Positions 2,953-39,666 of a stretch of DNA of 64,000 bases are shown piece by piece (the first letter of the stretch is position 1; the number at the start of each line of letters is the position of its first letter). The position numbers and the translations under genes were made by a program. Source of the stretch: Bugula neritina (lineage: Eukaryota; Animalia; Bryozoa); NCBI GenBank assembly GCA_964035545.1, contig OZ037771.1, forward strand, positions 11,474,480-11,538,479, written 5' to 3'. The notes under the pieces were generated by a model, which saw only the letters and a list, made by a program, of their open reading frames with translations, was not told the origin of the DNA and searched no databases.

Positions 2953-5900
2953 GTTGGATTCAATACTGATATTCAATTTCAACTTCAACAGTTGATTTTA
3001 CTATTTGGTATTTAATATTTTATAATAATTTAAATTATCAAGTATTTATGTTAAATTTACGAGTCTTATTATTATTAATATTATCTTTATTATAATATAA
3101 CTAATATTGTAAATGCCAACTAGTTGCACTTAGTTTTACACTAACAGTATGACTATGGGTATGACTATGGACTTCCTCTTACAATCAGTATACCGTATCT
3201 GTATTCTTATAGTTTTAAACTAGTTAAGTTCAAGTTATTCTAACTCTAACTCTAAGTAACTAACACTGTTAGTAACAGCAGGCGTGGCTGTAAAAACCCC
3301 AAAGTCAAACTACTGCACTCATTCACCCCCAAATTGGAGCTGCTTATAGAAAAAAAATCTATCAAATGTACGTACTAAGTACAAATTTAAATTGTTATAA
3401 CGTGTTTCACAGTAGTTGTTTTTTAGAATTCCGGGTCTAGCAGTAGCTGGAAGTCTAAAATCTCTCAATTTTAGTGAGTAGTAGTAGCAGTCTACTAGTA
3501 ATAGAAAGTATAGCCTTCGCGTTTCAACTTAATAATTAGGAAAAAATCAGATTTTGGTTCCTCAAGTCTCAGAACTTCATGAACAAATTCACACATTTTA
3601 GGCTATACTCAGGCTATTCAATTTAAGTTGGTTTTAGCGTCTTCCCAAATAGACACAAATCTTTCCCTCCTGATGTGGAGGGTCTCCCGCCACGTAAAAT
3701 CTAAAGCTTCTTCAGCCTCTACGTCTACAGCATTTTTTAACAAATTACTTTTTTAGTAATATAATTTCAATTTGTCGTTAATTTTTTTGTATTATAATTA
3801 CGATTATTCAAATCATAATCGATATCATAAAATTTAATATGATAAATAAAATATCAATATGTTTATAATATTCATTATATTCATATTCAATACCGACATT
3901 GACAATCGCAATGAATATCAATATGAATATGATTATCAATTATCATAATGTTAATCATAGTGATAATCATTATCATAATGATAATCATAATAAGTATCAA
4001 TATGAATGGACATTGTTCTACTTCTAATAATTTTATGTACCAGTAGCCATAGATGTTGTCATAGTGCAGTTAGTGTTACTGTTAGTGTTAGACTTAAAGT
4101 GAGTAAGACTAAGAGTAAGAGTAAGTGTAAAACCAAGTCTATGACCATCTAATTCTATGACCTTGATATTAATAAATCATATTGGTATTCATATGGCCTG
4201 TTGTAATTGTATTAGTATTATTATAGGTCTATATCTAGCATTTACTTTTAGTTTTAGTAACAACTGTAGGTGTATAAATCATTACTGTAAATCAAATTAT
4301 AAGTAAATATAATGCTTGTAGTTGTACTGTTGTAACTATACTATTTCTACTATTAAGTGGTACTGGTAGTGATACTGATGATATTACTATTGTTATGAGT
4401 ATTAGTATTACTATTACTATTTTTAAATGTAGCAGTAATGCTGATAGTAATACTAATAATTCATCATTAATAATGTTTAAATTTATAATATTTGATTATA
4501 TCATTGACATTGACAAGAAGAATAGAAGAAAAGACATTGACAACATAAATTATATTTATTACAAAGTGGCAAAATATTTTCCCATTTTAAATTTATTATT
4601 ACTATGTATATTAGCACTAAGAGTAGAGTAAGTTCAACAGAAATGTTAACTTGTAAGTGTAACACTATTAGTATTACTATAACTAATAGAAATATTATTG
4701 TTAGGTTTAATTATATTTATACCTGATAAACTATTATTGATGGTATTATAATAATTAGTTTTGCTGTTAGATTTAGTTTTACTATAACTATTACTATGGT
4801 TGTTATTATTACTAATACTGATTACATATATAACTGGATTATAGTCACCACAAGTTGCTCAAATCAAATTGAAATTCGAGTTTAGTCAAATTATTCACCA
4901 AATCGAGTCATACTCTCTCGATAGTCCATAGGCAGACGATAAAATACGAGTCTTGTCCAGGCCAAATAACTGACTCACTCAATAGATCATTAAATGAATT
5001 CAGTCAATTTGAACTTTCCTGCATCTGGAAATCTTCATCAAATTGAAGTAGCATTGTTATTTGAGTTTTACTCTGCTATTCAGCTCACAATTACATAGGT
5101 CCAACTATGATGTGCGATTCTCGAATACAGTCTATTTGGAATTTATAATCTACGAATATCACTATTCATAACTGTCTGTATTCATATCGATTACCGTTGA
5201 CTCATTGTATATTTCATACCATGCAATATCATTATTAAAGTAGGAAATGCATCTTGTATTCATTTCCTGCAGGCTAATTTGAAACAACACATGATTGTTT
5301 TATATTGACTATAGTAATAAAGAGTAGCTGCTGGTTGTTCTGCAAAGGTATAGAGTGTATTGCTGAAATATTTAAGTGCCATGAGTTGTAACTAATGCAA
5401 ACCATTAGTATATGTTCATATACCCCTAAACTTACAATTTTACAAAACATTTCATAACTTCATCTAGATTAATAATTCTGGTTAGCAGTTACATCAGCTA
5501 TTATTTACCCCTGTCTATGTTTTTTATTATTCATTTTGATTTTTTGTGTTTTTGCAAATGTTATTTTTTAATATTTATGTAGATTTATTAATTGGCATTG
5601 CAGTAGTAATGAACTATACTGAAACACACCTGTATACATAAAACAGAACCTTTCACATCTGTAATCTCTGTAGTTTAGCATGACAAAATAGGTTTATATT
5701 TATCTCTCAAACACTATATTTGATGTGCTTTATCCTGCTCCCTATTGTTCATGTAATTTGTGAACTATACACACTCTTGAGAATTTTAAAATCATTTTTT
5801 CTAAATCATAATATTATATCTGTGATTTATATATGAAGTGTTCAATCAGCTTTTGCTCTCCTAATATAGTACTTATCTTGGCTTAATAATATTTGGTAGT

Positions 5901-6308
5901 TGTTATCAACTTCGTACGCCATTGAAAATCTATAAAATTATTCAATCAACCATAACCATGTATAATTAAACATTCTATTTTTATTAGAATAAGATTGTTA
6001 CACAAGATACTGAGCTGTTATCACGGGCTACTTCCATGTCAACACAATACTCAAATTAAGTGATGATTTGTGTTTATATTCTTAATATGTAAACTTATCA
6101 AATCGCATATCATTTCATTTGATTTCAACATAAATCATTGTTTTGGCACCTAAACTTAAAGTCTCGAACTTCTTTTAGGCATCATTTCCCATGTACTTAT
6201 TTAATATTGTATGACATATTATTGGGTAAAAAGTTACAGTAATTGGTAGTAAATTTATATGTTAAAATTCGAGAAAATCAAGGAGATATTTTGATACTGG
6301 TTTTACAG

Positions 6309-28720: not shown

Positions 28721-30650
28721 ATGAATAAGCCAATTAAGAGCACAAAGCCAAGAAGTAGAACAACTGGTTCTCAGTGTTTTGCGTACAACTGCTTCAACTA
28801 CCAATACAGCATTCGCAGTAAAGAAAAACGTATCTCATTTCATAAGTAAGTAAATGTTTTTTACTAGTAATAGACATGATTATGCTTATAGTAAATATGT
28901 TAGAGTAGCATTAGACTTTCATTTAGCCATAGAAACCGTAATAGTAATAATTATAATAGTTGTACTTGTAGTACTACTACTAGTACTAGTAGTAGTATTG
29001 CACTTTGACTTTCAGTTTCTAAAACTAATGCTACTACTACTGGTGGTGGTGGTGGTACTGGCGATAGTACTAGCAGTAGTAATAGTGTAGTGGCTGTGTG
29101 AAGTATACCCCCAACCTCCCATGTATTTAATATATGCAGCAGAAGACATGATATCATATATTGTAAAAGTTCCAAAAGACAATAACTCCGTTAGCGATGC
29201 CCACCGGCCAATAACATCCAGCCCTTCAGATATAAACAGCGCCTTGCGGCGCTCAGCCTCAGTCAAAGGATGACTGCCATGTAGACTAGGATAATATTGT
29301 GCAGCTGTTCCATATGTGTATTCTTCTGCAATTGCTGATAACTTTACTTGTATCTAATTAAATTTAAAATATAGATCTTTCACCAACGCTAAGTACTTCA
29401 GTTTTTCTCTCAAACCTCGTAGTAGATCATGCAGCAGTGATTCATGTATGCAATAATACCCCACTCTCGTTGTGCACAAAACTACAACAGTAGTACTAAC
29501 ACTAACAGTAGTACTAGTAGCAGCAGTAGTAGTATTGTATTTTGGTGTTACGCAGGGCCAGGCAATATCAGTATGATGTCTTTACTATTAGTATTCATAA
29601 TACGATTGATCATAACAGACACCAGTTAGTAAGACACTTGAATAGTAGCAAATATATGTGTTTAGGTTTCCCAATAAGCAAAAAGAGTTCAATCGCTGGA
29701 ATGTTTGGTGGAAGGTTTCTAAGCGGGTAGAAGAACCTAGTCCACGCTCTCTCCTGTGTAGTGATCACTTTTATGACAATTGTATTGAAAGCTCAGGCCG
29801 AAGTCGACGTCTGCTAGATGGAGCCGTTCCAGCAGAGGAGTTGGTTCCTCTTTCAGGGCCACCTGTAGTAAGCTGAATTTCTACTGCAGTGGTGACATAA
29901 TAAGATACTCCTTAGACATACTTTGCTGCATCGTACACCGTAATGTAAAATGTCAGCCATTTTTACAAATGTCCAAGCTTCCTGTGCGGCGTTGCTGTAC
30001 GTTAGGCTCAAACACTGATCATTTTAAAAAGTTGCGACGGGCTCCTATTAGACTGAAAGACGTTTGCGTCAATTCATTGGATATAAATGTCTAATGAAGT
30101 GTCATAGATCGTACCCACTATACAATAGCGCACTTTGAGAACTTTAGCCTGGACACATTAAAATGTCTGACATTTTACATTGTGGCAAAGTGCGTTTAGG
30201 GAGTAAAGCATCTGTTGATCATTTTATTTCAGAAGAAAAGTGCTCCACCTGTTACCGATGCTAATCAACATGCGGAGGAACCAGATATTGTTTTAGTTGA
30301 AGAAGCTGAAGCTAACCTGAACACCTCACCAGATGTAGTTCTTCAGGTTATTCAGATAATTTATATAGCTAATCAATGGTGTGGTATTTTTGTTATGTTG
30401 TAATAGGTTGTTGTATTGTTACTAGAACATAATTTTTTTAGTGGGTTATTCTCCTATTGGAGTAGAATAATTTATTATTATGTAGGACCATTGTTATAGT
30501 GCTTCTGTCGATGGGCTCAAGCAAAGGGTGATGCTTCTGGAAGAAAAAGTAAGCCAGTTGCAGAAGCAAGTTAGCAATTCAACTAGAAGGGAGATGAGGT
30601 CGAAAGTTAAGCTTGCGCAATTCAGCAAATTGGTAAAGGAAAATAATTGA
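28721..30650 (+). CDS. THAP zinc-finger protein with HCF-1-binding motif and C-terminal coiled coil (~200 aa)
   Basis: Exons 28721-28845, 29666-29867, 30233-30346, 30486-30650. Motifs CFAYNC...ISFHKFP...W...LLCSDHF...AVP, then DHCY and a heptad region. The start may be further upstream (in-frame ATG 28685, or a small exon 28583-28608). Confidence 0.85.
29907..30204. mobile_element. MITE, same family as 42838-43130 in opposite orientation
   Basis: Internal sequence (cattggatataaatgtc.aatgaagtgtcatagatc; gggctcctatt) is the reverse complement of that at 42930-43070; degenerate TIRs. Confidence 0.7.
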
Positions 30651-31681
30651 ATCAATAGTTGATTAGAAAAAAATTGAAGTAATTTACTGGCTTTGAATTA
30701 ATAAACTGATTGATTGACGATGCTATTGGTTAAGTAATCTGCTGCTAGTGTAGTAGTATTACCATACAGATATTCCAGATGGCACATTGAACCCCCCCTA
30801 CTTTTACTAAATCATTAGCTACATTTTATGATGCCGATTGATGAATCTTTAGGTGGGCTGAAATCTCAGGCTATGGCAAAGAAGAAAGATAAATTACAAC
30901 TTACACCTGATAGGTTGGTGTTTTATTTTTCATAATTTTTTTTAGCATTTTTAAAATTCTTTTCGACAAGCAATAGTTCTTTATGCTGTATATGTAACAA
31001 GTTGTGTTGCATGGTTAGGACGTCATGTACAGTAGTGTGGTTTATTCTTTTAGTTGTTGTTGGACCTTTGGATGCCATGAGTATGCCTCCGAGTGCCAAT
31101 TCAAGATGGAAGGTAATGCTAGGCTGTGTAGACCTGCATTGCGACCTGAAAGACGGACGATGACAACTGAGCAGATGGCGCTTTGCCAACTAACTTGTAA
31201 AGATCATGGACAGCTGCAGACTGTTGCTCCTTCACACACTTGAACATTTCCATTTAAATGCTTTTTCTATTGATTGTGTGGCTTTGGATGCATATAATGC
31301 TTCAAATCTCCCTCTGTGTAAAAGTTTGGGAGCACAAATAAACTTGGACATTTTTTATTTTAAAGGATGTAAAGTTTTTATTTCACCTGTCACATGATAA
31401 ACTATTAAAGTGCATATGTGCACTAAAATAAACCAATTGTAGTTGTTCATAATTATGGTAAAACTAAAATAAAATTAACTAAAAAATAACAAAAATATAC
31501 ACACACATGTGCATTATGTTTGTGCATGCACTGCAGCCAGCCTTCAGAGTAAAAAAGTTGTAGTAGTTAATGGTCAAAATGTAAATAAAAAAGAAAAAAA
31601 TTAAGGTTTTAAAAATAAACAATGCATCAATTCCATGATTTTGCAAGCTGTGAGTGTTGAATGTATGGTAGCATAATCATA

Positions 31682-32142
31682 CTAGTGTGTCCAGAGTTTA
31701 GTAAGAGTGGGCAATTCCAAGTTCATAAGATCAGTGATATAAGCAACAAGCTCTTCGTGAACAGTCTGAATGTCCTTAGACGCGTCTACAATCTGCAACA
31801 TGGCTTACAGTTATATGCCAAGAGTAAACAATAATAACTGGTCAGAAATAGATAAAGTAAATAAGTTAAATTATAAACCTATGGGGGAATCAGATAGTAC
31901 CTTCCAATAACTAAGGTCTTCCTTGCTCATGATGGATTTGAAGTTCTCAGCTACTCTTAGCTGAAAATCTGTTTGCTCATATCTCTCGTTTCCAAAGTCA
32001 GCTCTCTTGGCAGCGTCTTCAGAAGACAGTTGGAGATAGAGAACTAAGTCTGGACGTGGTAAACCTACCTCTGGTTGCTTACACCAATCTATGGTAAAAC
32101 CCTGTTAAAAAAAGATGGTAGTTTTGTGATTTATATATGATT

Positions 32143-32182
<40 letters not shown>

Positions 32183-32608
32183 GCTTGTGACTCCTAGAGT
32201 CACTTGAGCACTCTGGCTTGAGTTTACACACCTTTTAAATATGCTTTAGTAAAACTATAAGTTTCTACTATTGCGAAGGTGTGGGTCATGGTACTCTGTT
32301 CTGTGCTGATGAGGGGACAAATCCCGAAACAGCTGCTGTCCACAGATTGAGATATTACGCTCTCATTTAATGCTCAGCAATGACATTAAATGATTGAGCA
32401 CTCTCACCATGGTCACAAACTCAAGCTGCTAGCATTTTGCAATGCTCGTGACTCCTAGAGTCACTTGAGCACTCTGGCTTGAGTTTACACACCTTTTAAA
32501 TATGCTTTAGTAAAACTATAAGTTTTACTATTGCGAAGGTGTGGGCCATGGTACTCTGTTCTGTGCTGATGAGGGGACAAACCCCGAAACAGCTGCTGTC
32601 CACAGATT

Positions 32609-32691
<83 letters not shown>

Positions 32692-34667
32692 ATTCATGGT
32701 TAGACTTTGTAAAGCAGTCAAATACCACAACGTATATCTTATTCTTAGGTTATATAATGTGCAGTCTGCAGAAAAGATTCATGAGCATTTCCCAATATAC
32801 ATACATGTTACTAAGCAGCTATACTATTTCTCATGCAGTTATATTATATTTAAAGTGAGATTCACTATGCATGCATGTAATTTCAAGACAGTTGCATATC
32901 GTAGTATAAATATTCTTTAATTTTAAATGTTGGAGCTCTGTGAAAACTCAGAAGTTTGGAGTGTTTAGGTAAGATAACAAGGACTCTGCCTAACACTATA
33001 TTGTCAACATGGTTTCCCGTGGTGCAGAATCAATGATTGCATGTTTACTTTTTGTGACATCAGCAATAACCTAAATACCGTAAGCATGTTGCTTATAAAA
33101 GAGCACGCTTGTCCCATCACCATACTTTGACTGTTTTACTATATGCTACATCACATACATATTCTTATTGTCTAGTGTACATGTCCATTCGCATTGCTAG
33201 CACATTATAATATAATTATATATAAGTATAGACTATAGACTATCTCATACTGGCTTAGCTGCAGTGAAGGCAACTCCCGAATATGCGTATCTGTCTATAA
33301 TCACAATGGTTCCTTTTTTTATCAGCTCTAGGATTTTTGGTCTACAGGAAACAAGATCACAGTCTATTACTCAGCTTGCTACAGAAAAGGTAAACTCATC
33401 AGCATGTCTACAAAGGCTCAGGTCACACTTGAAATGGTTTCTAACTAACAAAACATTGAGTCAATTATTAGAAGAAAGCAATCCTTGATTTTTCATCAAT
33501 TGTTCATTTATTCAACGTTAAACTTGCATATTATCCCATCAATCTGTATGTAATGAGTACATGTGAATATAGTAATGCAAGCAGCAATTTAATTGGCCAT
33601 CTTGATGCTACATGCTCCGAGATAGGACAGAATAGTTGCATAATAAACTCACATGTTTTCCCATCTGTTTGCTGAGAAGAGCAGGTGCACAGCGTGGTCA
33701 TCCAGTTCACATTTCTTAGACAAGTAATCTTTAATTACAGCACCAATGGCAGTAGTCCTGTCTGTAAACGCACATTACATGCAATCACATGTAATAGACA
33801 CAGCCACATTTCTTTTATTTTTCAATCATGTCATAATATATTAATTTATCAGCGCATTGCTTATATATATTGATCCCTAAGTTGGAATTTATCATAGGAG
33901 AAAATCTCACAGGTCAATAAGCAATAAATTTAAATTAATTACTAATCGTACTTTCTAGCTGCAGGTATGATCATAATGTATTCCAAATAATCAGGAAATA
34001 CTATATATAAGCTTGGCATGACTTAGAAGAAACAGGGAGCATCACGCTAACTTAAAGTAAACACGGAGTCATGGGTTCGAGCCTTAGAAAATTCCATTAG
34101 CCACTATAAAAAAACCTTTCTATCAGGGGGTTCTTGTAGTGTACAGTTTACCCAGTGGCCTCCGTGGTGTAATGGTAGCACACTTGCTTGCAAGCCAGAG
34201 GACTCGGGTTCGATTCCCAGTGGGGGCAATTATTTTACAAGCTATTTCGGCCTTTAGTGAAGTGTAGTTGAAGTACTCCGAGGGAGTTGAGAGGCCAGGA
34301 GAGCCTGATGACTGAAGGAGTAGTAGATAGGCCAGTGGAGTTCAGAGAACTGGGTGGGATGTAGTGTTGAGTTTACCCAGTAGTCTCCGTGGTGCAATGG
34401 TAGCACACTTGCTTGCAAGCCAGAGGACTCGGGTTCGATTCCCAGTTGGGGCAATTATTTTACAGTTCTCACAAGGATAGTGACTATAAGCTATAGGTTT
34501 TATAAGGTAAAAGAAGTAAGCGAAAGGGTTGCATATCTACCTGGGCAGCTAAACAGCTCAACCGTGTGACCATTCTGTGAGAGAGTATCTTTCAGCAGTT
34601 CACACTGAGTAGACTTGCCTGCTCTGTCACAGCCTTCCAATACTACCAGCACTCCTCTTTGTGACAT
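31682..34667 (-). CDS. DTYMK: Thymidylate kinase, paralog A (212 aa, diverged)
   Basis: Exons 34667-34541, 33761-33653, 33341-33251, 32101-31901, 31792-31682. P-loop [42 protein letters not shown]; intact ORF. Confidence 0.93.
32300..32346 (+). ncRNA. Type I hammerhead ribozyme, copy 1 (predicted cleavage after C32340)
   Basis: Stem I tctgtg/cacaga; core CTGATGA; stem II gggg-acaaa-tccc; GAAA; minimal stem III cagc.gctg; GTC cleavage triplet. Confidence 0.85.
32560..32606 (+). ncRNA. Type I hammerhead ribozyme, copy 2 (predicted cleavage after C32600)
   Basis: Same architecture, with a perfect stem II gggg-acaaa-cccc. Confidence 0.87.
34158..34228 (+). pseudogene. tRNA-like unit in LTR1 (intact A/B boxes, defective anticodon arm)
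   Basis: Acceptor stem gcctccg/tgggggc, D arm gtgt-aatggta-gcac, B box ggttcgattcc; anticodon loop has only 6 nt; followed by TTTT. Confidence 0.7.
34383..34453 (+). pseudogene. tRNA-like unit in LTR2
   Basis: As LTR1, with D stem gtgc/gcac. Confidence 0.7.
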
Positions 34668-35022
34668 GGCGGCACTACTCTGTATATCTATATATTATGT
34701 AATATATAACTTGCTATAGAGATCATATGAAACCCGGCAAATTATACACTAACTCTAATATATCTCACCATTATAATTTATTTTAATTTCATATCTGCTA
34801 GTTTGAATACGAATACACATTTGCTTTTACTTTTTTCCTATCTGAATTCACTGCGTATCCTAAATTCTTTATTTCTCATTACGAATATGAAATATGTTAT
34901 AAAATTACAATTAAAATTACATAATGTGTGCAAGAAACACCTATAGATAAATTTTACAAGAGCTGCTGCATTGCTTTCAGCCTTCCAATATTCACTGCCT
35001 TATAAAAAAGACTTCTAGGTAA

Positions 35023-35366
35023 GCCTAGGGCCACACGGTGCGTATTTTCGCATGCGAAAATTGAAACCACAAGTAGCAAAGGTGTCCACTGTGCGCGTTG
35101 AGAAAACATTCGCACTTGTCGCTCTGCATTTTCAACGCAGGTGCGAATCGTCTCTGTCGTCGTCACCTAATTGGCTGGTAGTTATTAAGCGAGCCCAATT
35201 TCTTTATTTTAGTGCTAAATTCCAGTAAAATGCGTTTTATTGAAATCGAGTGCGATTTAAAAATGAAAGCTTTATTTATCACGCATCACTGACGCTACAG
35301 TGGACGCCTTTGCTACTTGTGGTTTCAATTTTCGCATGCGAAAATACGCACCGTGTGGCCCTAGGC
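35023..35366. mobile_element. PIF/Harbinger-type MITE
   Basis: ~58-bp perfect TIRs gcctagggccacacggtgcgtattttcgcatgcgaaaattgaaaccacaagtagcaaagg; TAA TSD; near-identical inverted copy at 43569-43911. Confidence 0.92.
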
Positions 35367-35847
35367 TAAGAGAGTGCATGTGGGGGAATGTGAAGAATAT
35401 AGAGAGATTGCATAATTGTGCAGAGATGAGGAGTACGCCAGAGTAGAGCTGAGATTGTGAGCGGATATAAATTGAGAATGGGTTGAGGTGTACTAGCGAG
35501 TGTTCAACCCAGTAGCCAACTGTTGTGGAGCACCCCAGACGAGCACTCAGGAGTCTTACTCCCTCCCTCTACACATAAGGAGCTGAGGCTAGCATTGCAG
35601 CCAAGCAGAACACCAACCCCTAAGCTGTACCATAGACAATGTGACTTGATAGCTGATACCAGGTCCTTAGGTATCAAGATGAAGAGAAGAATTTGACTAT
35701 ATTTGTTGCAGTGCAGATGTTGAGTTTATGACATGGTATCTATAAATGTTGAAATACTCAAATAAAGCAGTATACTTTGACTTTGACAATAGAAACCAAA
35801 GTTATGTGAAAATCCTTACCATAATATGATGTATTAACATTAATTAT

Positions 35848-36243
35848 ATTTACCAATATACAGAAATATAACCCATATAACTGACTCACAAGTTAGAAAG
35901 AACAAAATAGGAGTTCCTACCTCATCAAGCTATCAATCTACAGCGCATGGATATATATCGCTAATATGGTGTTAAGTTTGTGACACTGTATTAATGATAT
36001 GTTGCTAATCTGCATGAAACAATCAATTAGAGCAGTACAACCTCCAAACTCAAATTTCAGCACTAAAGTTATATGAAAATCCATACCATATGAATTATAA
36101 TGTCTTTGTAATTGATATTTACCAATAAATATACAGGGATATAACACTTATAATATAACTGACTTACAAGTTGGAAGATATAGTTTAGAAAGAACAAGAG
36201 AAGAGTTCCTACTTTATCAAGCTATGAATATACAGTGTGCAGA
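35848..36243. repeat. Imperfect ~110-bp direct duplication (35848-35950 vs 36117-36243)
   Basis: atttaccaata...tataactgact.acaagtt...agaaagaacaa...gagttcctac..tcaagctat occurs twice. Confidence 0.7.
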
Positions 36244-36945
36244 TGCACCCTTGAGTGGTCACAGCAACACTATATTATAACTTGTGACTGAAGTACATAA
36301 TCATTACCAGGGATATTTGAGACTGGGGAATTCCCTAAATCTGCCTGACAGCTGTTTAAATTGGCTATCAGAATGATGACACCCAACAGATAGCTAAGTA
36401 TTAAGTATGAGATGGCAAATAGCCTGAAACTTTATTTACATAAATGCAAAATGAACTAAAAAACGCAAGTTATGGAAAATGTAATGAATTCTCTATACAC
36501 ATATGAATACAAATAGCCTATAATAAAATTATACATCAGGATTAATTTAATTATATACAATAAAACAAGTTGCAAGGATGGGTGTCTAGTTTCTACAGCA
36601 CATCACGATATTACTTATGTATCAGGTGCTGTGCTTATCCGTGCATACAGTTATACAGCTACATGTATATTACATATAGACATAACAATAGTTAAACACT
36701 TAGCATTAGATGCTTTACATGCCTTGCAGGAGGACAATGATCTCCATGCTCTCAGAAAGTGTATAATGTTTATATAATGAGGTAATTCGTTTATATACAA
36801 CTAAGACTACCAGTACTGTGTGTCCATACTGAGTTTACAGTACTCCGTTATTGATGCAAATGTTCACTTGGCTTTAAAAGAGAATAACTCCTGATATATA
36901 AGCTTCCAATGAATATCAACGCAGTATTTAATAGCCGTGGAGTGA

Positions 36946-39666
36946 TTACACAACAACTGCGTCGCCAGAGAAACATGGCTTCTTCTTAAGAGGAGAGTCA
37001 CCAGCACGTGATGAGCTCACTTCCTTTTCAACCCACAGTGAAGAAAGAGGAGGCAAATCTGAATTCATCAGGTCGCATATTACATCGGTGAGTTTAGTGT
37101 GAAGGCTGTCCACGTCTGTGGCAGCGTCTATTATCTGTAGGACAATAAACAGATATCTACTGTAAAATACGAACTCAGATTGCATTCTGTGCTTTTCCAG
37201 TAAAGTTCTTAAAATATACACAAGTTCCAGTAATCTGGTGAAAATTGTACAGAAATGTTGTTATCCAGTGAATAAGACTTTTCAATTTTCACATTTACTA
37301 CAAGTGACACCACAGGGGAAAAATGAAATTTGATAACCTAGAACTTTAAAAACTGTGTTGTCTCAAACAGAAACAATCAGAGTAATAGTGGGTTAAAGAG
37401 ATACAGTTTAGATGTGGTTGTGTAAGAGAATGTTTACATTGAAGATAAGAATATTCCAAATGGAGATTCGCAGAAACGTTTACTGCGTATCTATATAAAT
37501 ATAGCGAGTACCATTTAGTAAATTATTATTCTATTGAACTTTTGAATGTATTTACTGCAGGACTAGCAAGAATAATTTGAACCACTAAAAAACTAGACTT
37601 TATCGCAGCGAAAACCAACTTCTTTTGTTTTGCAACAAAACACTGACATTTCACCAGCTTCAACCACACAGAATTGGAGGAGCAAAATTCTACTAATTCT
37701 AGAGCCAATTTTTTCAGCTTCCTTGTTACACGGCAAAGTTTAAAATGGCAACCAGGGATGTCTAACCTTCCAGTTGTCATCCTTATTCAACACTTCATAG
37801 TTGACAGCAACTCTCTTCTGAAACTCTGTCTGTTCGTACCGCTCCTTGCCAAACCCACCTCTCTTTACAGCCTCCTCAGACGGGAGAGTTAGGAAGAGAA
37901 CAAGATCCGGCCGAGGTAAGCCCACATCTGACTGCTTGCACCAGTCAATGGTGAAACCCTACTCAAATGTTACAGTCTATAGCTTTAGACTAGAGATCAT
38001 GAGCAGAGAACTACTACATATATTCTGAGTTGTCTTTTCAATTAATTTACTTAGAGTTTGCAAGTTAATTGCACCAGCAGTAGAAACATACTTCTGTATA
38101 GCACACCAACTATCTCTCTAAGTATAATGAATTGGTGAAACCAACAGAGATATATATTGCAGACAGAGGATGCTATATTATCTAGTTTAGGCTGCATTAT
38201 AGACAAGAGCGGACAATTTCTATTTTGACTTAAAAATATTATACTCTTGACACTGTCTTGATTACAAAAATAACTAAACTATGTATTGTATATACAGTTG
38301 AAATTAGAAAGCTGCCATCAACTAAACGTGTAGCAGTGATGGCATAAACTCGGAGTGACCCTCTGGAAAGGACACAAGTATTGTACAGGAAGTTATATAA
38401 TACTTGTATTCACACAGAGGAATTAATGTTAGAAACGCTAACAGTAGGAAGTTCAAGTAATTCAACTCAGACTTACTGGTTTAGCTGCAGTGAAGGCAAC
38501 TCCCGAGTAGGCATATCTGTCTATAATGACAGTGGTGCCTTCAGAGATCTTCTTCTTTATATTCGGTCTGCAACACGTGACAGGTGTTATGGGGGACAGA
38601 CAGACACCCCCCCCTCCTGCCTCGCTATTCACTTATGTACAGCATGCTGCTTTGTCATTAGCTTTTATTAGCTTTTTGAGAAAACTGCATCAAAAGGATA
38701 ATACATTTCTTAAAATTTAGACATGGATGTTTTTTAGCAAAGATATGCCAAACTGTATAAAATCAGACAATATACTAGAGCCCAAAGGAGGCCAAATAGA
38801 ATTTTCTAGACAGTAAAGCACATGATATAGCAACAGAAAACCGGTAGCTGCGACTACATCAAGCCTAAGTATCTGAACTCCATGCAAGCAGCCATTTAAT
38901 TGGTTATCTAAATCCTACACGACCTGGGATAGGACAGAAAAAGAACTAAAACTCACACAAGTTCCCATCTGTTTGCCGAGAAGAGCAGGTGCACAGCATG
39001 ATCATCCAGTTCACATTTCTTAGACAAGTAATCACCAATCACAGCACCAATGGCAGTAGTCCTGTCTACAAACGCAAGAGTATTCTATTACATTTATTAG
39101 ACCTACTTGTGAACGCTTGTCTACTTGATAAGGAACAGGAGTAGACAACTTTAAAATATGGTTCAAAAAAATGAAACTCGCGAATTAAAAGATGTGGAAT
39201 ACCTATTTATAGAGCAGATTATGAGTGTAGGTTGTATGATATTATGATAGTTATTTCTGCAGTTTATGAGTAATGAGTTTCAAAAGTTATGCTGCGTAAT
39301 GTTTTATTTAGCTAAAAAAACATTATTTAATTGAATGCTTAACCCATCAAATTTTAAAAGAAGACAATTCCCAATTTCTTTAAAAAATAAATAAAATTAG
39401 CAAAATTATTAATTATAAATTTTAAGCTTGCAGCAAATGACTGATAAAGCATAATAACATGTGAAAATAAAGTGAGGAAATTTTCTGAGTATCATGAAAG
39501 TGAATCTTCAAATAAACTAACCTGGAAATCTAAACAGCTCAACATTTACTCCCTGTTTAGTGAGAGTGTCCTTCAACATCCTGCACTGTGTAGACTTGCC
39601 AGACCTATCACATCCCTCCAGCACAATCAGTGCCCCCCTCTTCAACAGATCTGACGCTGCGGGCAT
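36946..39666 (-). CDS. DTYMK: Thymidylate kinase, paralog B (241 aa, canonical motifs, C-terminal extension)
   Basis: Exons 39666-39522, 39065-38957, 38567-38477, 37958-37767, 37134-36946. [34 protein letters not shown]. An in-frame upstream ATG at 39717 is also possible. Confidence 0.95.

Follow-up and report, generated by a model that had tools for sequence, protein, structure and literature searches.

LTR retrotransposons include TRIMs, the terminal-repeat retrotransposons in miniature. Those with tRNA-like LTRs were recently named Helenus, or TRIMp3, by Kojima (2024; PMC10886601). Published animal Helenus elements make 4-bp target site duplications (TSDs), carry primer-binding sites (PBSs) for tRNA 3' ends, and have Gypsy partners. 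Fungal Helenus elements make 5-bp TSDs, carry PBSs for either the anticodon loop or the 3' end of a tRNA, and have Copia partners; plant Helenus elements also make 5-bp TSDs (PMC10886601). The six animal phyla listed for the group do not include Bryozoa (PMC10886601).

Two other TRIM groups, Cassandra in plants and Ajax in nemerteans, hold a Pol III small-RNA gene unit, with its promoter and terminator, in each LTR. The Ajax PBS is canonical, matching tRNA-Leu at its 3' end (PMC10886601). Priming can also take other routes. In Tf1, the PBS and the 5' end of the element's own RNA form an 11-bp duplex, and an RNase H cut at the duplex end makes the primer (PMC7175516).

The Bugula neritina element described here lies in a window of 64,000 nt, the whole stretch of DNA analysed; positions are those of the window (Table 1). 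Residues 34135-34464 form a single 330-bp unit: an LTR of 105 bp, an internal region of 120 bp, and a second LTR of 105 bp. The LTRs are direct repeats with starts 225 nt apart, identical at 99 of 105 positions (94%), and have TGTA...TACA ends: both begin TGTAG and finish TTTTACA. A sequence-only reading of the window had described two 105-bp TG...CA direct repeats with a gttct TSD, and a 120-bp spacer with a purine-rich end next to the 3' LTR. All of this is present, the purine-rich end being GGGTGGGA. Open reading frames in the element reach at most 66 aa and merely read through the tRNA-like repeats; none is meaningful. The 23-nt leader of the LTR starts TGTAGT, as do the LTRs of two autonomous elements (L083 and L084), and is a candidate integrase end (att) plus minimal U3.

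Table 1. Features of the element, in window coordinates
Feature	Position	Strand	Basis
Left TSD copy, gttct	34130-34134	.	Sequence
5' LTR, 105 bp, TGTAG...TTTTACA	34135-34239	+	Direct repeat; boundaries identical in all family copies
LTR leader, 23 nt, 5' of the tRNA-like unit	34135-34157	+	Kept among copies and sister subfamilies
LTR1 tRNA-like unit, 6-nt anticodon loop	34158-34228	+	Rfam RF00005, 43.3 bits, E 1.8e-7
LTR1 A box, TGGTGTAATGG	34165-34175	+	Within the tRNA-like unit
LTR1 B box, GGTTCGATTCC	34207-34217	+	Within the tRNA-like unit
TTTT run, 3 nt before the 5' LTR end	34233-34236	+	Sequence; candidate Pol III terminator
Candidate PBS, AGCTATTTCGGC	34240-34251	+	Exact reverse complement of tRNA-Phe(GAA) nt 1-12; conserved among copies
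Internal region, 120 bp, non-coding, G/A-rich, without TTTT	34240-34359	+	Sequence
Hairpin with 5-bp stem, AGTTC aga GAACT, directly 5' of the PPT	34339-34351	+	Fold
Polypurine-type tract (PPT), GGGTGGGA, adjoining the 3' LTR	34352-34359	+	Sequence; almost invariant among copies
3' LTR, 105 bp	34360-34464	+	Direct repeat; tRNA-like unit 34383-34453, TTTT 34458-34461
Right TSD copy, gttct	34465-34469	.	Sequence

Each LTR is essentially a degenerate tRNA gene set between the 23-nt leader and a terminal ACA. The Rfam tRNA model, with a gathering score of 29, matches the first unit at 43.3 bits and the second at 33.9 bits. In the Rfam alignment, both units have a one-base gap in the anticodon loop along with mispairs in the anticodon and T stems. 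ARAGORN calls the first unit alone as a tRNA, and assigns it no anticodon. The tRNA-like unit fills 71 of the 105 nt (68%) of each LTR, in line with the cloverleaf share of about 70% first estimated; the A and B boxes, the broken anticodon arm, and the trailing TTTT described with it are likewise all seen. No other Rfam family was matched, and the LTR holds no 5S unit. Hammerhead ribozyme families, scanned as a test for a retrozyme, gave no match at gathering score in 30000-39000.

The locus might be read instead as a tandem pair of tRNA pseudogenes, or as two tRNA-derived SINEs that inserted independently 225 bp apart: each repeat scores as an Rfam tRNA, and ARAGORN calls one tRNA gene. However, the genome contains at least 40 full-length copies, 86-96% identical, so that the whole 330-bp unit recurs with its internal 120 bp, and the 5-bp TSDs flank the pair. 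Moreover, a PBS and a PPT lie between the repeats, which have TG...CA ends, and a tail of the A-rich or LINE type is missing. Copy number and the TSDs around the whole unit refute the pseudogene and paired-SINE explanation, to which we attach almost no probability. They also bear out the original view of the locus as one mobile element, for which a genome search for copies with the same boundaries and variable TSDs had been proposed; distinct 5-bp TSDs are present in most of the full copies compared, and such recurrence goes well past what chance could produce. Nor is the unit itself a tRNA-derived SINE. A SINE2 has one tRNA-related head and a tail that is LINE-derived or A-rich; it lacks LTRs, and the length of its TSDs varies. 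Here, a PBS and a PPT lie between paired LTRs, and the TSD is fixed at 5 bp.

TSDs are perfect in 15 of 23 full copies, all different and exactly 5 bp, and six more of the 23 match at four of five positions. LTR-LTR identity within single elements ranges from 85 to 100% across copies. An LTR 24-mer has about 563 genomic matches, and a 24-mer across the junction of the internal region and 3' LTR (PPT/LTR) has about 155, each against 0 in the control. Solo LTRs are probably present in the genome, because LTR matches exceed internal-junction matches by 563 to 155; no tandem arrays were seen among 30 loci examined. The copy in the window is a moderately old, inert one, from a family of hundreds that inserts with 5-bp TSDs. 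It sits within a transcribed gene region. Its right flank matches only itself, and its left flank matches itself and one 47-nt partial paralogue (L080). This paralogue, the one paralogous empty site, continues uninterrupted across the insertion point and so confirms the insertion boundaries. The flanks are low-copy rather than part of a multi-copy SINE, contrary to the suggestion that the insertion cleanly splits such an element.

As judged from its sequence organization, the element is a Helenus-type (TRIMp3) TRIM. The resemblance is extensive: a short non-coding LTR element; LTRs whose tRNA-like sequence is non-functional and keeps its A and B boxes; PBS and PPT placed between these LTRs; multiple copies with TSDs; several subfamilies in one genome; and a length of 330 bp, within the published range of 311-1263 bp (PMC10886601). 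Unlike published animal Helenus elements, the Bugula element has a 5-bp TSD, a PBS for tRNA-Phe nt 1-12, and signals in common with a PR-RT-RH-IN group marked by Pfam DUF7047. The 5-bp TSD is a real difference, because animal Helenus elements make 4 bp, as the sequence-only reading had correctly stated (PMC10886601). That reading also raised the prospect of a new lineage, which fits: Bryozoa, tRNA-Phe, and the PBS motif are all absent from Kojima (2024) and its supplements (PMC10886601). Cassandra and Ajax resemble the element in design, each LTR carrying the unit of a Pol III small-RNA gene together with its promoter and terminator, and Ajax resembles it in its 5-bp TSDs too (PMC10886601). 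Their LTR units, however, are 5S-derived rather than tRNA-derived; Rfam finds only tRNA here, which excludes the element from both groups. We are fairly confident that it represents a non-autonomous LTR retrotransposon of the Helenus/TRIMp3 kind, ordered as LTR, PBS, 120-bp core, hairpin and G-rich PPT, and LTR, which would work by the mechanism set out below.

The lack of a TGG-type primer site, noted from the start, is real: TGG is absent from the first 35 nt 3' of LTR1, which rules out a canonical PBS. It is explained by complementarity of another kind. The 12 nt flush with LTR1, AGCTATTTCGGC, are complementary at every position to nt 1-12 of tRNA-Phe, for which this genome has five identical genes. 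The match spans the LTR edge to the first base of the tRNA; on the tRNA it covers the 5' strand of the acceptor stem, nt 8-9, and the start of the D stem. By chance, a 12-nt match would arise with a probability of about 2e-4 if any tRNA window is allowed, and of about 3e-6 if the window must be 5'-terminal. Outside the main subfamily, the motif occurs 60 times in the genome versus 3 in the control. Of 37 sites inspected, four are apparently random matches, and every other one is either a tRNA-Phe gene or an LTR...ACA junction. Among unrelated families, the sequence diverges right after PBS base 12.

The region after LTR1 had also been proposed as a place to look for complementarity to internal tRNA regions or to the element's own transcript; the match found is to the 5' end of tRNA-Phe, not to the transcript's own 5' end. 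Watson-Crick pairing of the PBS region with the LTR extends over no more than 6 nt, which rules out self-priming as well as a primer made from the element's own tRNA-like RNA. Autonomous LTRs contain no 8-mer of the PBS complement.

The same PBS 12-mer follows ACA in at least four intact gag-pol families of the same genome. Four autonomous elements (L074-L077) are 4.3-5.3 kb long, with LTRs 100% identical, 5-bp TSDs, a gag with CCHC, and a pol. The TRIM and the autonomous elements have four features in common: the 12-nt PBS; TGT...ACA ends; the hairpin-PPT layout; and the 5-bp TSD. A hairpin followed by a G run, with different stem sequences, is present in L074-L077, L083, L084, L086, and L091. 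A search for autonomous elements sharing LTR termini, proposed at the outset, thus succeeded and yielded the same PBS and hairpin-PPT layout as well. Beyond these two, the internal part of the TRIM has no similarity to the autonomous elements; short signals alone link it to its partners, and they single out no one autonomous family. The TRIM appears to depend on autonomous LTR retrotransposons that share its PBS.

The partner pol is ordered PR-RT-DUF7047-RNase H-IN. In an AlphaFold model (pLDDT 91), three helices make up the DUF7047 stretch, and a lone RNase H fold comes straight after them. The group is therefore not Odin-like or retrovirus-like, which would call for dual RNase H, with a degenerate tether domain and a second RNase H. 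On Pfam markers it is provisionally kept apart from Copia, BEL/Pao, and classic Ty3/Gypsy as well, since RVT_2, Peptidase_A17, and RT_RNaseH are absent. The best fold matches are the RTs of HIV-1, CaMV, foamy virus, and MMLV, with none clearly closest.

The motif extends to other species. Upstream of gag, the exact PBS motif was found in the bryozoan Watersipora subatra, the leafhopper Macrosteles quadrilineatus, and five other assemblies; environmental assemblies are among the sources of these related elements. Three more elements carry a variant PBS, AGCTATCCCGGC, AGCTATCACGGC, or AGCTATCGCGGC, and these forms differ solely at tRNA acceptor-stem positions 4-6. In every family, across unrelated LTR sequences, the motif is flush with the LTR end.

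These observations suggest priming chemistry based on tRNA-Phe. The tRNA-Phe 5' end, paired with the 12-nt PBS, would prime minus-strand synthesis, and the priming 3'-OH would come from a cut after tRNA nt 12, by analogy with the Tf1 RNase H cut after its 11-bp duplex. The proposed 12-bp duplex would thus work like that of Tf1/sushi elements. The Tf1 partner is its own 5' end, whereas here it would be a host tRNA acting in trans, because neither the TRIM nor the autonomous LTRs hold a PBS complement; own-transcript complementarity to the PBS, which characterizes Tf1/sushi-type self-priming, is not found. The need to cut the tRNA recalls Copia, Ty5, and fungal Helenus elements, which also use a part other than the 3' end; their PBSs, in contrast, match the anticodon stem-loop, mostly of initiator tRNA-Met (PMC10886601). 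The PBS pattern implies what would be a distinct route for RT priming: in the literature searched, the coverage of which is incomplete, we found no description of a PBS matching a tRNA 5' end. A primer from tRNA nt 1-12 requires a cut in the D stem, of a kind not known from any element.

The primer might instead be another RNA ending ...GCCGAAAUAGCU-3', such as a host 5' tRNA fragment or a small RNA, or the motif might serve packaging or tRNA capture with no role in priming. A pre-cut fragment would spare the element the cut, and known non-canonical priming uses the tRNA anticodon region (PMC10886601) or the element's own 5' end (PMC7175516). However, in every family the motif occupies exactly the PBS position against the LTR, and no alternative PBS candidate is seen. 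On its far side it stops precisely at base 1 of the tRNA, and its variants change only within the acceptor stem. Even a host 5' fragment of tRNA-Phe would leave tRNA-Phe as the source of the primer. We therefore consider another primer, or a non-priming motif, improbable for this Helenus-type TRIM, and return to tRNA-Phe below.

Conserved A and B boxes and T run suggest that Pol III transcribes the TRIM. Sister TRIM subfamilies that are otherwise 70-80% alike keep A box TGGTGTAATGG, B box GGTTCGATTCC, the T run, the ACA, and the same PBS. In almost every copy, TTTT runs occur solely at the two LTR positions; the absence of further runs is not significant (P ~0.5 by element composition, 0.13 by window composition).

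Transcription by Pol II, from a cryptic LTR promoter or by host read-through, would instead mean that the tRNA-like unit has no promoter role and is left over from a SINE or tRNA that inserted into an ancestral LTR. With the layout of a standard tRNA gene, most Pol III transcripts would be expected to end in the TTTT of the 5' LTR, before the PBS, and the window copy does lie inside a transcribed gene region. Even the Helenus paper asks for experimental validation before a Pol III promoter is taken to be functional (PMC10886601). Yet both boxes and the T run persist across subfamilies that have otherwise diverged. The T run is also specific to TRIMs, kept in their diverged subfamilies and absent from autonomous LTR ends, and a Pol II promoter would have scarcely any space in the 23 nt 5' of the tRNA-like unit. 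For Cassandra, the counterpart with a 5S unit, transcription from that Pol III unit is reported (PMC10886601). On balance, we consider Pol II transcription unlikely.

Under Pol III transcription, initiation would occur at the tRNA-like unit of the 5' LTR. Some transcripts would pass the first TTTT and end at the TTTT of the 3' LTR, giving an RNA whose R is the tRNA-like unit and whose U5 is nearly absent; the TTTT at 34233-34236 would be the Pol III terminator that sets the R/U5 border. Proteins of autonomous elements would package and copy this RNA, and integrase would insert the TRIM copy with a 5-bp duplication. The most general form of the proposal is tentative, possible rather than probable: an unnamed, widespread animal clade of DUF7047 LTR elements, together with its parasitic Helenus TRIMs, primes from the 5' end of tRNA-Phe after an RNase H cut past base 12, with the TRIM driven by Pol III and its terminator acting as the R/U5 border.

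Through this element the Helenus/TRIMp3 group, itself only recently defined, gains a phylum, Bryozoa, and a third type of partner; the element also breaks the published rule that animal Helenus elements make 4-bp TSDs and depend on Gypsy. Counts of tRNA genes will come out too high in this genome, because LTR copies score as such by the hundred. The PBS motif is placed exactly at the LTR border, and is conserved in bryozoans, an insect, and environmental eukaryotes. If the proposed priming is true, the tRNA 5' ends GCCGGGAUAGCU, GCCGUGAUAGCU, and GCCGCGAUAGCU are expected in the source organisms of L084, L088, and L089/L090, respectively. Such priming would amount to Tf1 self-priming carried out in trans, and would give retroelements a third use of tRNAs, next to 3' ends and anticodon-loop cuts. 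Priming from the 5' end of tRNA-Phe would also let these elements escape the silencing by 3' tRNA fragments that is aimed at canonical primer sites.

Helenus elements are TRIMs, miniature retrotransposons with terminal repeats, with tRNA-like sequence in their LTRs, and are placed in TRIMp3 together with Cassandra and Ajax (Kojima 2024, PMC10886601). The window element displays every structural hallmark of Helenus, and its repeats, ends, flanking pentamer, tRNA-like units, T runs and spacer are as the sequence-only reading described them. LTR1 and LTR2, which start 225 nt apart, are identical at 99 of 105 positions (94%) and share the termini 5' TGTAG and 3' TTTTACA; the 120-nt spacer between them ends in GGGTGGGA. 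Each tRNA-like unit has an anticodon loop of only six bases, and neither its anticodon stem nor its T stem is free of mispairs (Rfam; tRNA gathering score, 29). ARAGORN calls the LTR1 unit alone as a tRNA, and could not name its anticodon.

Features of the element, its neighbouring exon, and related loci (window positions unless a C-number precedes them)
Feature	Position	Details
Direct repeat 1 (LTR1)	34135-34239	105 nt
Direct repeat 2 (LTR2)	34360-34464	105 nt
gttct pentamer	34130-34134 and 34465-34469	flush with outer edges of LTR1 and LTR2
tRNA-like unit, LTR1	34158-34228	71 nt; Rfam tRNA, 43.3 bits
A box	34165-34175	TGGTGTAATGG
B box	34207-34217	GGTTCGATTCC; perfect
tRNA-like unit, LTR2	34383-34453	71 nt; Rfam tRNA, 33.9 bits
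TTTT runs	34233-34236 and 34458-34461	3 bases short of each LTR end
Putative primer-binding site (PBS)	34240-34251	AGCTATTTCGGC; 12 nt flush with LTR1; exact reverse complement of tRNA-Phe(GAA) nt 1-12
Thymidylate kinase exon 1 (first coding exon)	34542-34667	minus strand; Pfam PF02223, E 2.5e-7
L074	C2:25607000-25616500	own genome; intact gag-pol LTR retrotransposon
L075	C2:20498500-20508499	own genome; intact gag-pol LTR retrotransposon
L076	C1:14642500-14652499	own genome; intact gag-pol LTR retrotransposon
L077	C1:12509200-12519199	own genome; intact gag-pol LTR retrotransposon
L082		leafhopper Macrosteles quadrilineatus; exact PBS motif
L083		Watersipora subatra; exact PBS motif
L085, L086, L087, L091, L092		other assemblies; exact PBS motif
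L084		ENA/Logan contig; PBS variant AGCTATCCCGGC, same position
L088		ENA/Logan contig; PBS variant AGCTATCACGGC, same position
L089 and L090 (same element)		ENA/Logan contigs; PBS variant AGCTATCGCGGC, same position

The element belongs to a mobile family. At least 40 full-length copies of the 330-bp unit, at 86-96% identity, are present in the 216-Mb assembly (1264 candidates at first look, 40 of them scored). Among 23 full copies with both ends present, 15 are flanked by perfect target-site duplications, each exactly 5 bp and all different, and a further six by duplications that agree at four of five positions; the other copies with variable duplications that the sequence-only reading proposed to look for do exist. 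A 24-mer from the junction of polypurine tract (PPT) and 3' LTR has 155 genomic matches at ≤3 mismatches (reversed control, 0), and an LTR 24-mer has 563 (control, 0). This leaves about 250 LTRs beyond the needs of full elements; they may represent solo LTRs or belong to sister subfamilies. Within copies, LTR-LTR identity spans 85-100% (median 93%), and in two copies the LTRs do not differ at all, which points to family activity that was prolonged and lasted until fairly recently. Judged by its LTR identity (94.3%), the window copy is middle-aged.

One earlier claim is unsupported: the insertion was said to split a SINE cleanly, but the left flank matches only itself and one 47-nt partial, and the right flank only itself. 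That partial match, a genomic paralogue of the flank (L080), runs unbroken across the insertion point, and thus confirms the element boundaries independently. The TRIM lies 78 bp past the end of the thymidylate kinase exon, in opposite orientation, and probably within the gene's first intron. Nearby, two candidate hammerhead ribozymes at a (TA)n tract (32181-32612) are unsupported by Rfam at either threshold: no hammerhead family reaches the gathering score in 30000-39000, and none is found at E ≤ 1 in 32000-32800, where the only matches are low-complexity noise.

The primer site is the element's unusual feature. No TGG occurs within the first 35 nt after LTR1, as had been noticed, so the CCA 3' end of a tRNA is unable to pair there. 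The 12-mer that does follow LTR1, an exact reverse complement of tRNA-Phe nt 1-12, is likely a PBS that pairs with the 5' end of this tRNA. The genome carries five identical tRNA-Phe genes with the matching 5' start, and the pairing runs from the first tRNA base to the LTR edge and no further: the terminal ACA of the LTR has no complementarity to tRNA nt 13-15. The chance of a fixed 12-mer matching any 12-nt window in ~50 tRNAs is ~2e-4, and ~3e-6 for the 5'-terminal window alone. Moreover, the site is near-invariant across family copies. The sequence-only reading had proposed to check 34240-34260 for complementarity to internal tRNA regions or to the 5' end of the element's own transcript. 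The tRNA match is to the 5' end, at nt 1-12 of tRNA-Phe. With the element's own LTR the region pairs over at most 6 nt, which rules out its tRNA-like RNA as the primer, and self-priming of the Tf1 type as well.

The same site marks autonomous elements. Not counting the main TRIM subfamily, AGCTATTTCGGC has 60 occurrences in the genome, versus 3 for a control. Among 37 of these sites fetched are five tRNA-Phe genes and four random-looking matches; the rest are LTR ends (...ACA plus motif), whose sequences part ways immediately after the motif. Some are diverged sister TRIMs in which A and B boxes, T run and ACA are all retained, and the others are full-length elements. The intact gag-pol elements L074-L077 represent four distinct families of 4.3-5.3 kb, with LTRs of 211-445 bp that are 100% identical within each element; they look to be active now, or to have been very recently. 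All have TGT...ACA ends, 5-bp duplications and the tRNA-Phe 5'-end PBS, the complement of which is absent from their LTRs. Each encodes a gag with a CCHC knuckle and a pol of 1016-1107 aa, ordered protease, reverse transcriptase (RT), DUF7047, RNase H and integrase.

The sequence-only reading proposed a search for autonomous elements with like LTR termini and PPT; these four families have like termini and a like PPT layout. In the TRIM and all four families, a hairpin of 5-8 bp places its 3' arm against the G-rich tract that precedes the 3' LTR, with a different stem sequence in each family. The TRIM thus has every short cis signal in common with this group, namely the end sequences, the PBS, the hairpin-PPT layout and the duplication length; no longer sequence is shared. 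Other TRIMp3 elements and their partners likewise share short signals and no longer sequence (PMC10886601). We infer that the DUF7047 elements mobilise the TRIM.

Conservation of the site extends to other organisms. The RT-RNase H region of pol has 937 relatives at E ≤ 1e-10, the nearest named ones from the bryozoan Watersipora subatra. Eleven loci were fetched, representing ten foreign elements, and the exact motif lies upstream of gag in seven: six right after ACA, and L092 after ...CAGA. The other four loci carry variants that depart from the main form only in the three bases opposite tRNA positions 4-6; bases facing nt 7-12 and 1-3 are unaltered. Positions 4-6 belong to the acceptor stem, a region variable between taxa. 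The elements vary as if the site tracked host tRNA 5' ends. In the short environmental contigs L089 (a TARA metagenome scaffold) and L092, elements are arranged head-to-tail or circularly permuted (for example, 1-2296 is repeated at 3859-6154), an arrangement that would result if LTR repeats had collapsed, if copies lay in tandem, or if the DNA were in circular form.

In the partner group, the Pfam markers RVT_2 (Copia), Peptidase_A17 (BEL/Pao), and RT_RNaseH and RT_RNaseH_2 (classic Ty3/Gypsy) are all absent. Its integrase is closest, among solved structures, to retroviral integrases. In a confident model of the RT-RNase H region (pLDDT 91.1), DUF7047 forms three helices after RT, and one RNase H fold comes immediately behind them, which rules out the dual-RNase-H architecture of the Odin type (PMC9040795); the RTs of HIV-1, cauliflower mosaic virus, foamy virus and MMLV match the model about equally. 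An Atlas search returned clusters with the same domain set, mostly arthropod and none named.

The sequence-only reading proposed a possible new lineage with non-canonical priming. The TRIM type is already published, and the element is a new member of it. Published animal Helenus, however, have 4-bp duplications (as the sequence-only reading stated), primer sites for tRNA 3' ends, and links to Gypsy, whereas here the duplications are 5 bp, the site matches the tRNA-Phe 5' end, and the partners are DUF7047 elements. Bryozoa is not among the six animal phyla listed with Helenus (PMC10886601); "Bryozoa", "tRNA-Phe" and the motif are absent from that paper's text and six supplementary files. Neither there nor in the literature searched (coverage incomplete) did we find any PBS reported to match the 5' end of a tRNA.

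How might such an element replicate? Pol III transcription would start at the tRNA-like unit of the LTR. This is suggested by retention of both boxes (A and B) and of the T run across subfamilies otherwise 70-80% alike; by the mere 23 nt of LTR upstream of the unit; by the T run itself, missing from autonomous LTR ends; and by the fact that, in nearly all copies, TTTT occurs at the two LTR ends and nowhere else. Against this stands the first TTTT, at which most transcripts should halt before the PBS. Read-through RNA alone, from the LTR1 tRNA-like start to the LTR2 T run, would then be the template; its R would be the tRNA-like unit, and its U5 ~3 bases. Cassandra reportedly is transcribed comparably, from the 5' LTR's 5S unit through to that of the 3' LTR (PMC10886601).

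Priming needs a 3'-OH where LTR and PBS meet, which would require a cut in the tRNA after nt 12. RNase H may make this cut, acting in trans, after which tRNA-Phe would prime the minus strand. The nearest precedent is Tf1, in which the PBS forms an 11-bp duplex with the RNA 5' end and RNase H cuts between bases 11 and 12 (PMC7175516); here, the same cut is proposed in trans. By this analogy, Tf1-like cleavage of tRNA-Phe is a tentative candidate for the priming chemistry, at slightly below an even chance.

Several older, diverged sister subfamilies (L043, L067-L069, L071-L073) have the 12-nt PBS, B box and T run in common, and the Helenus population of this genome is thus a diversified one. Finders of tRNA will call hundreds of such LTRs as tRNA genes or pseudogenes.
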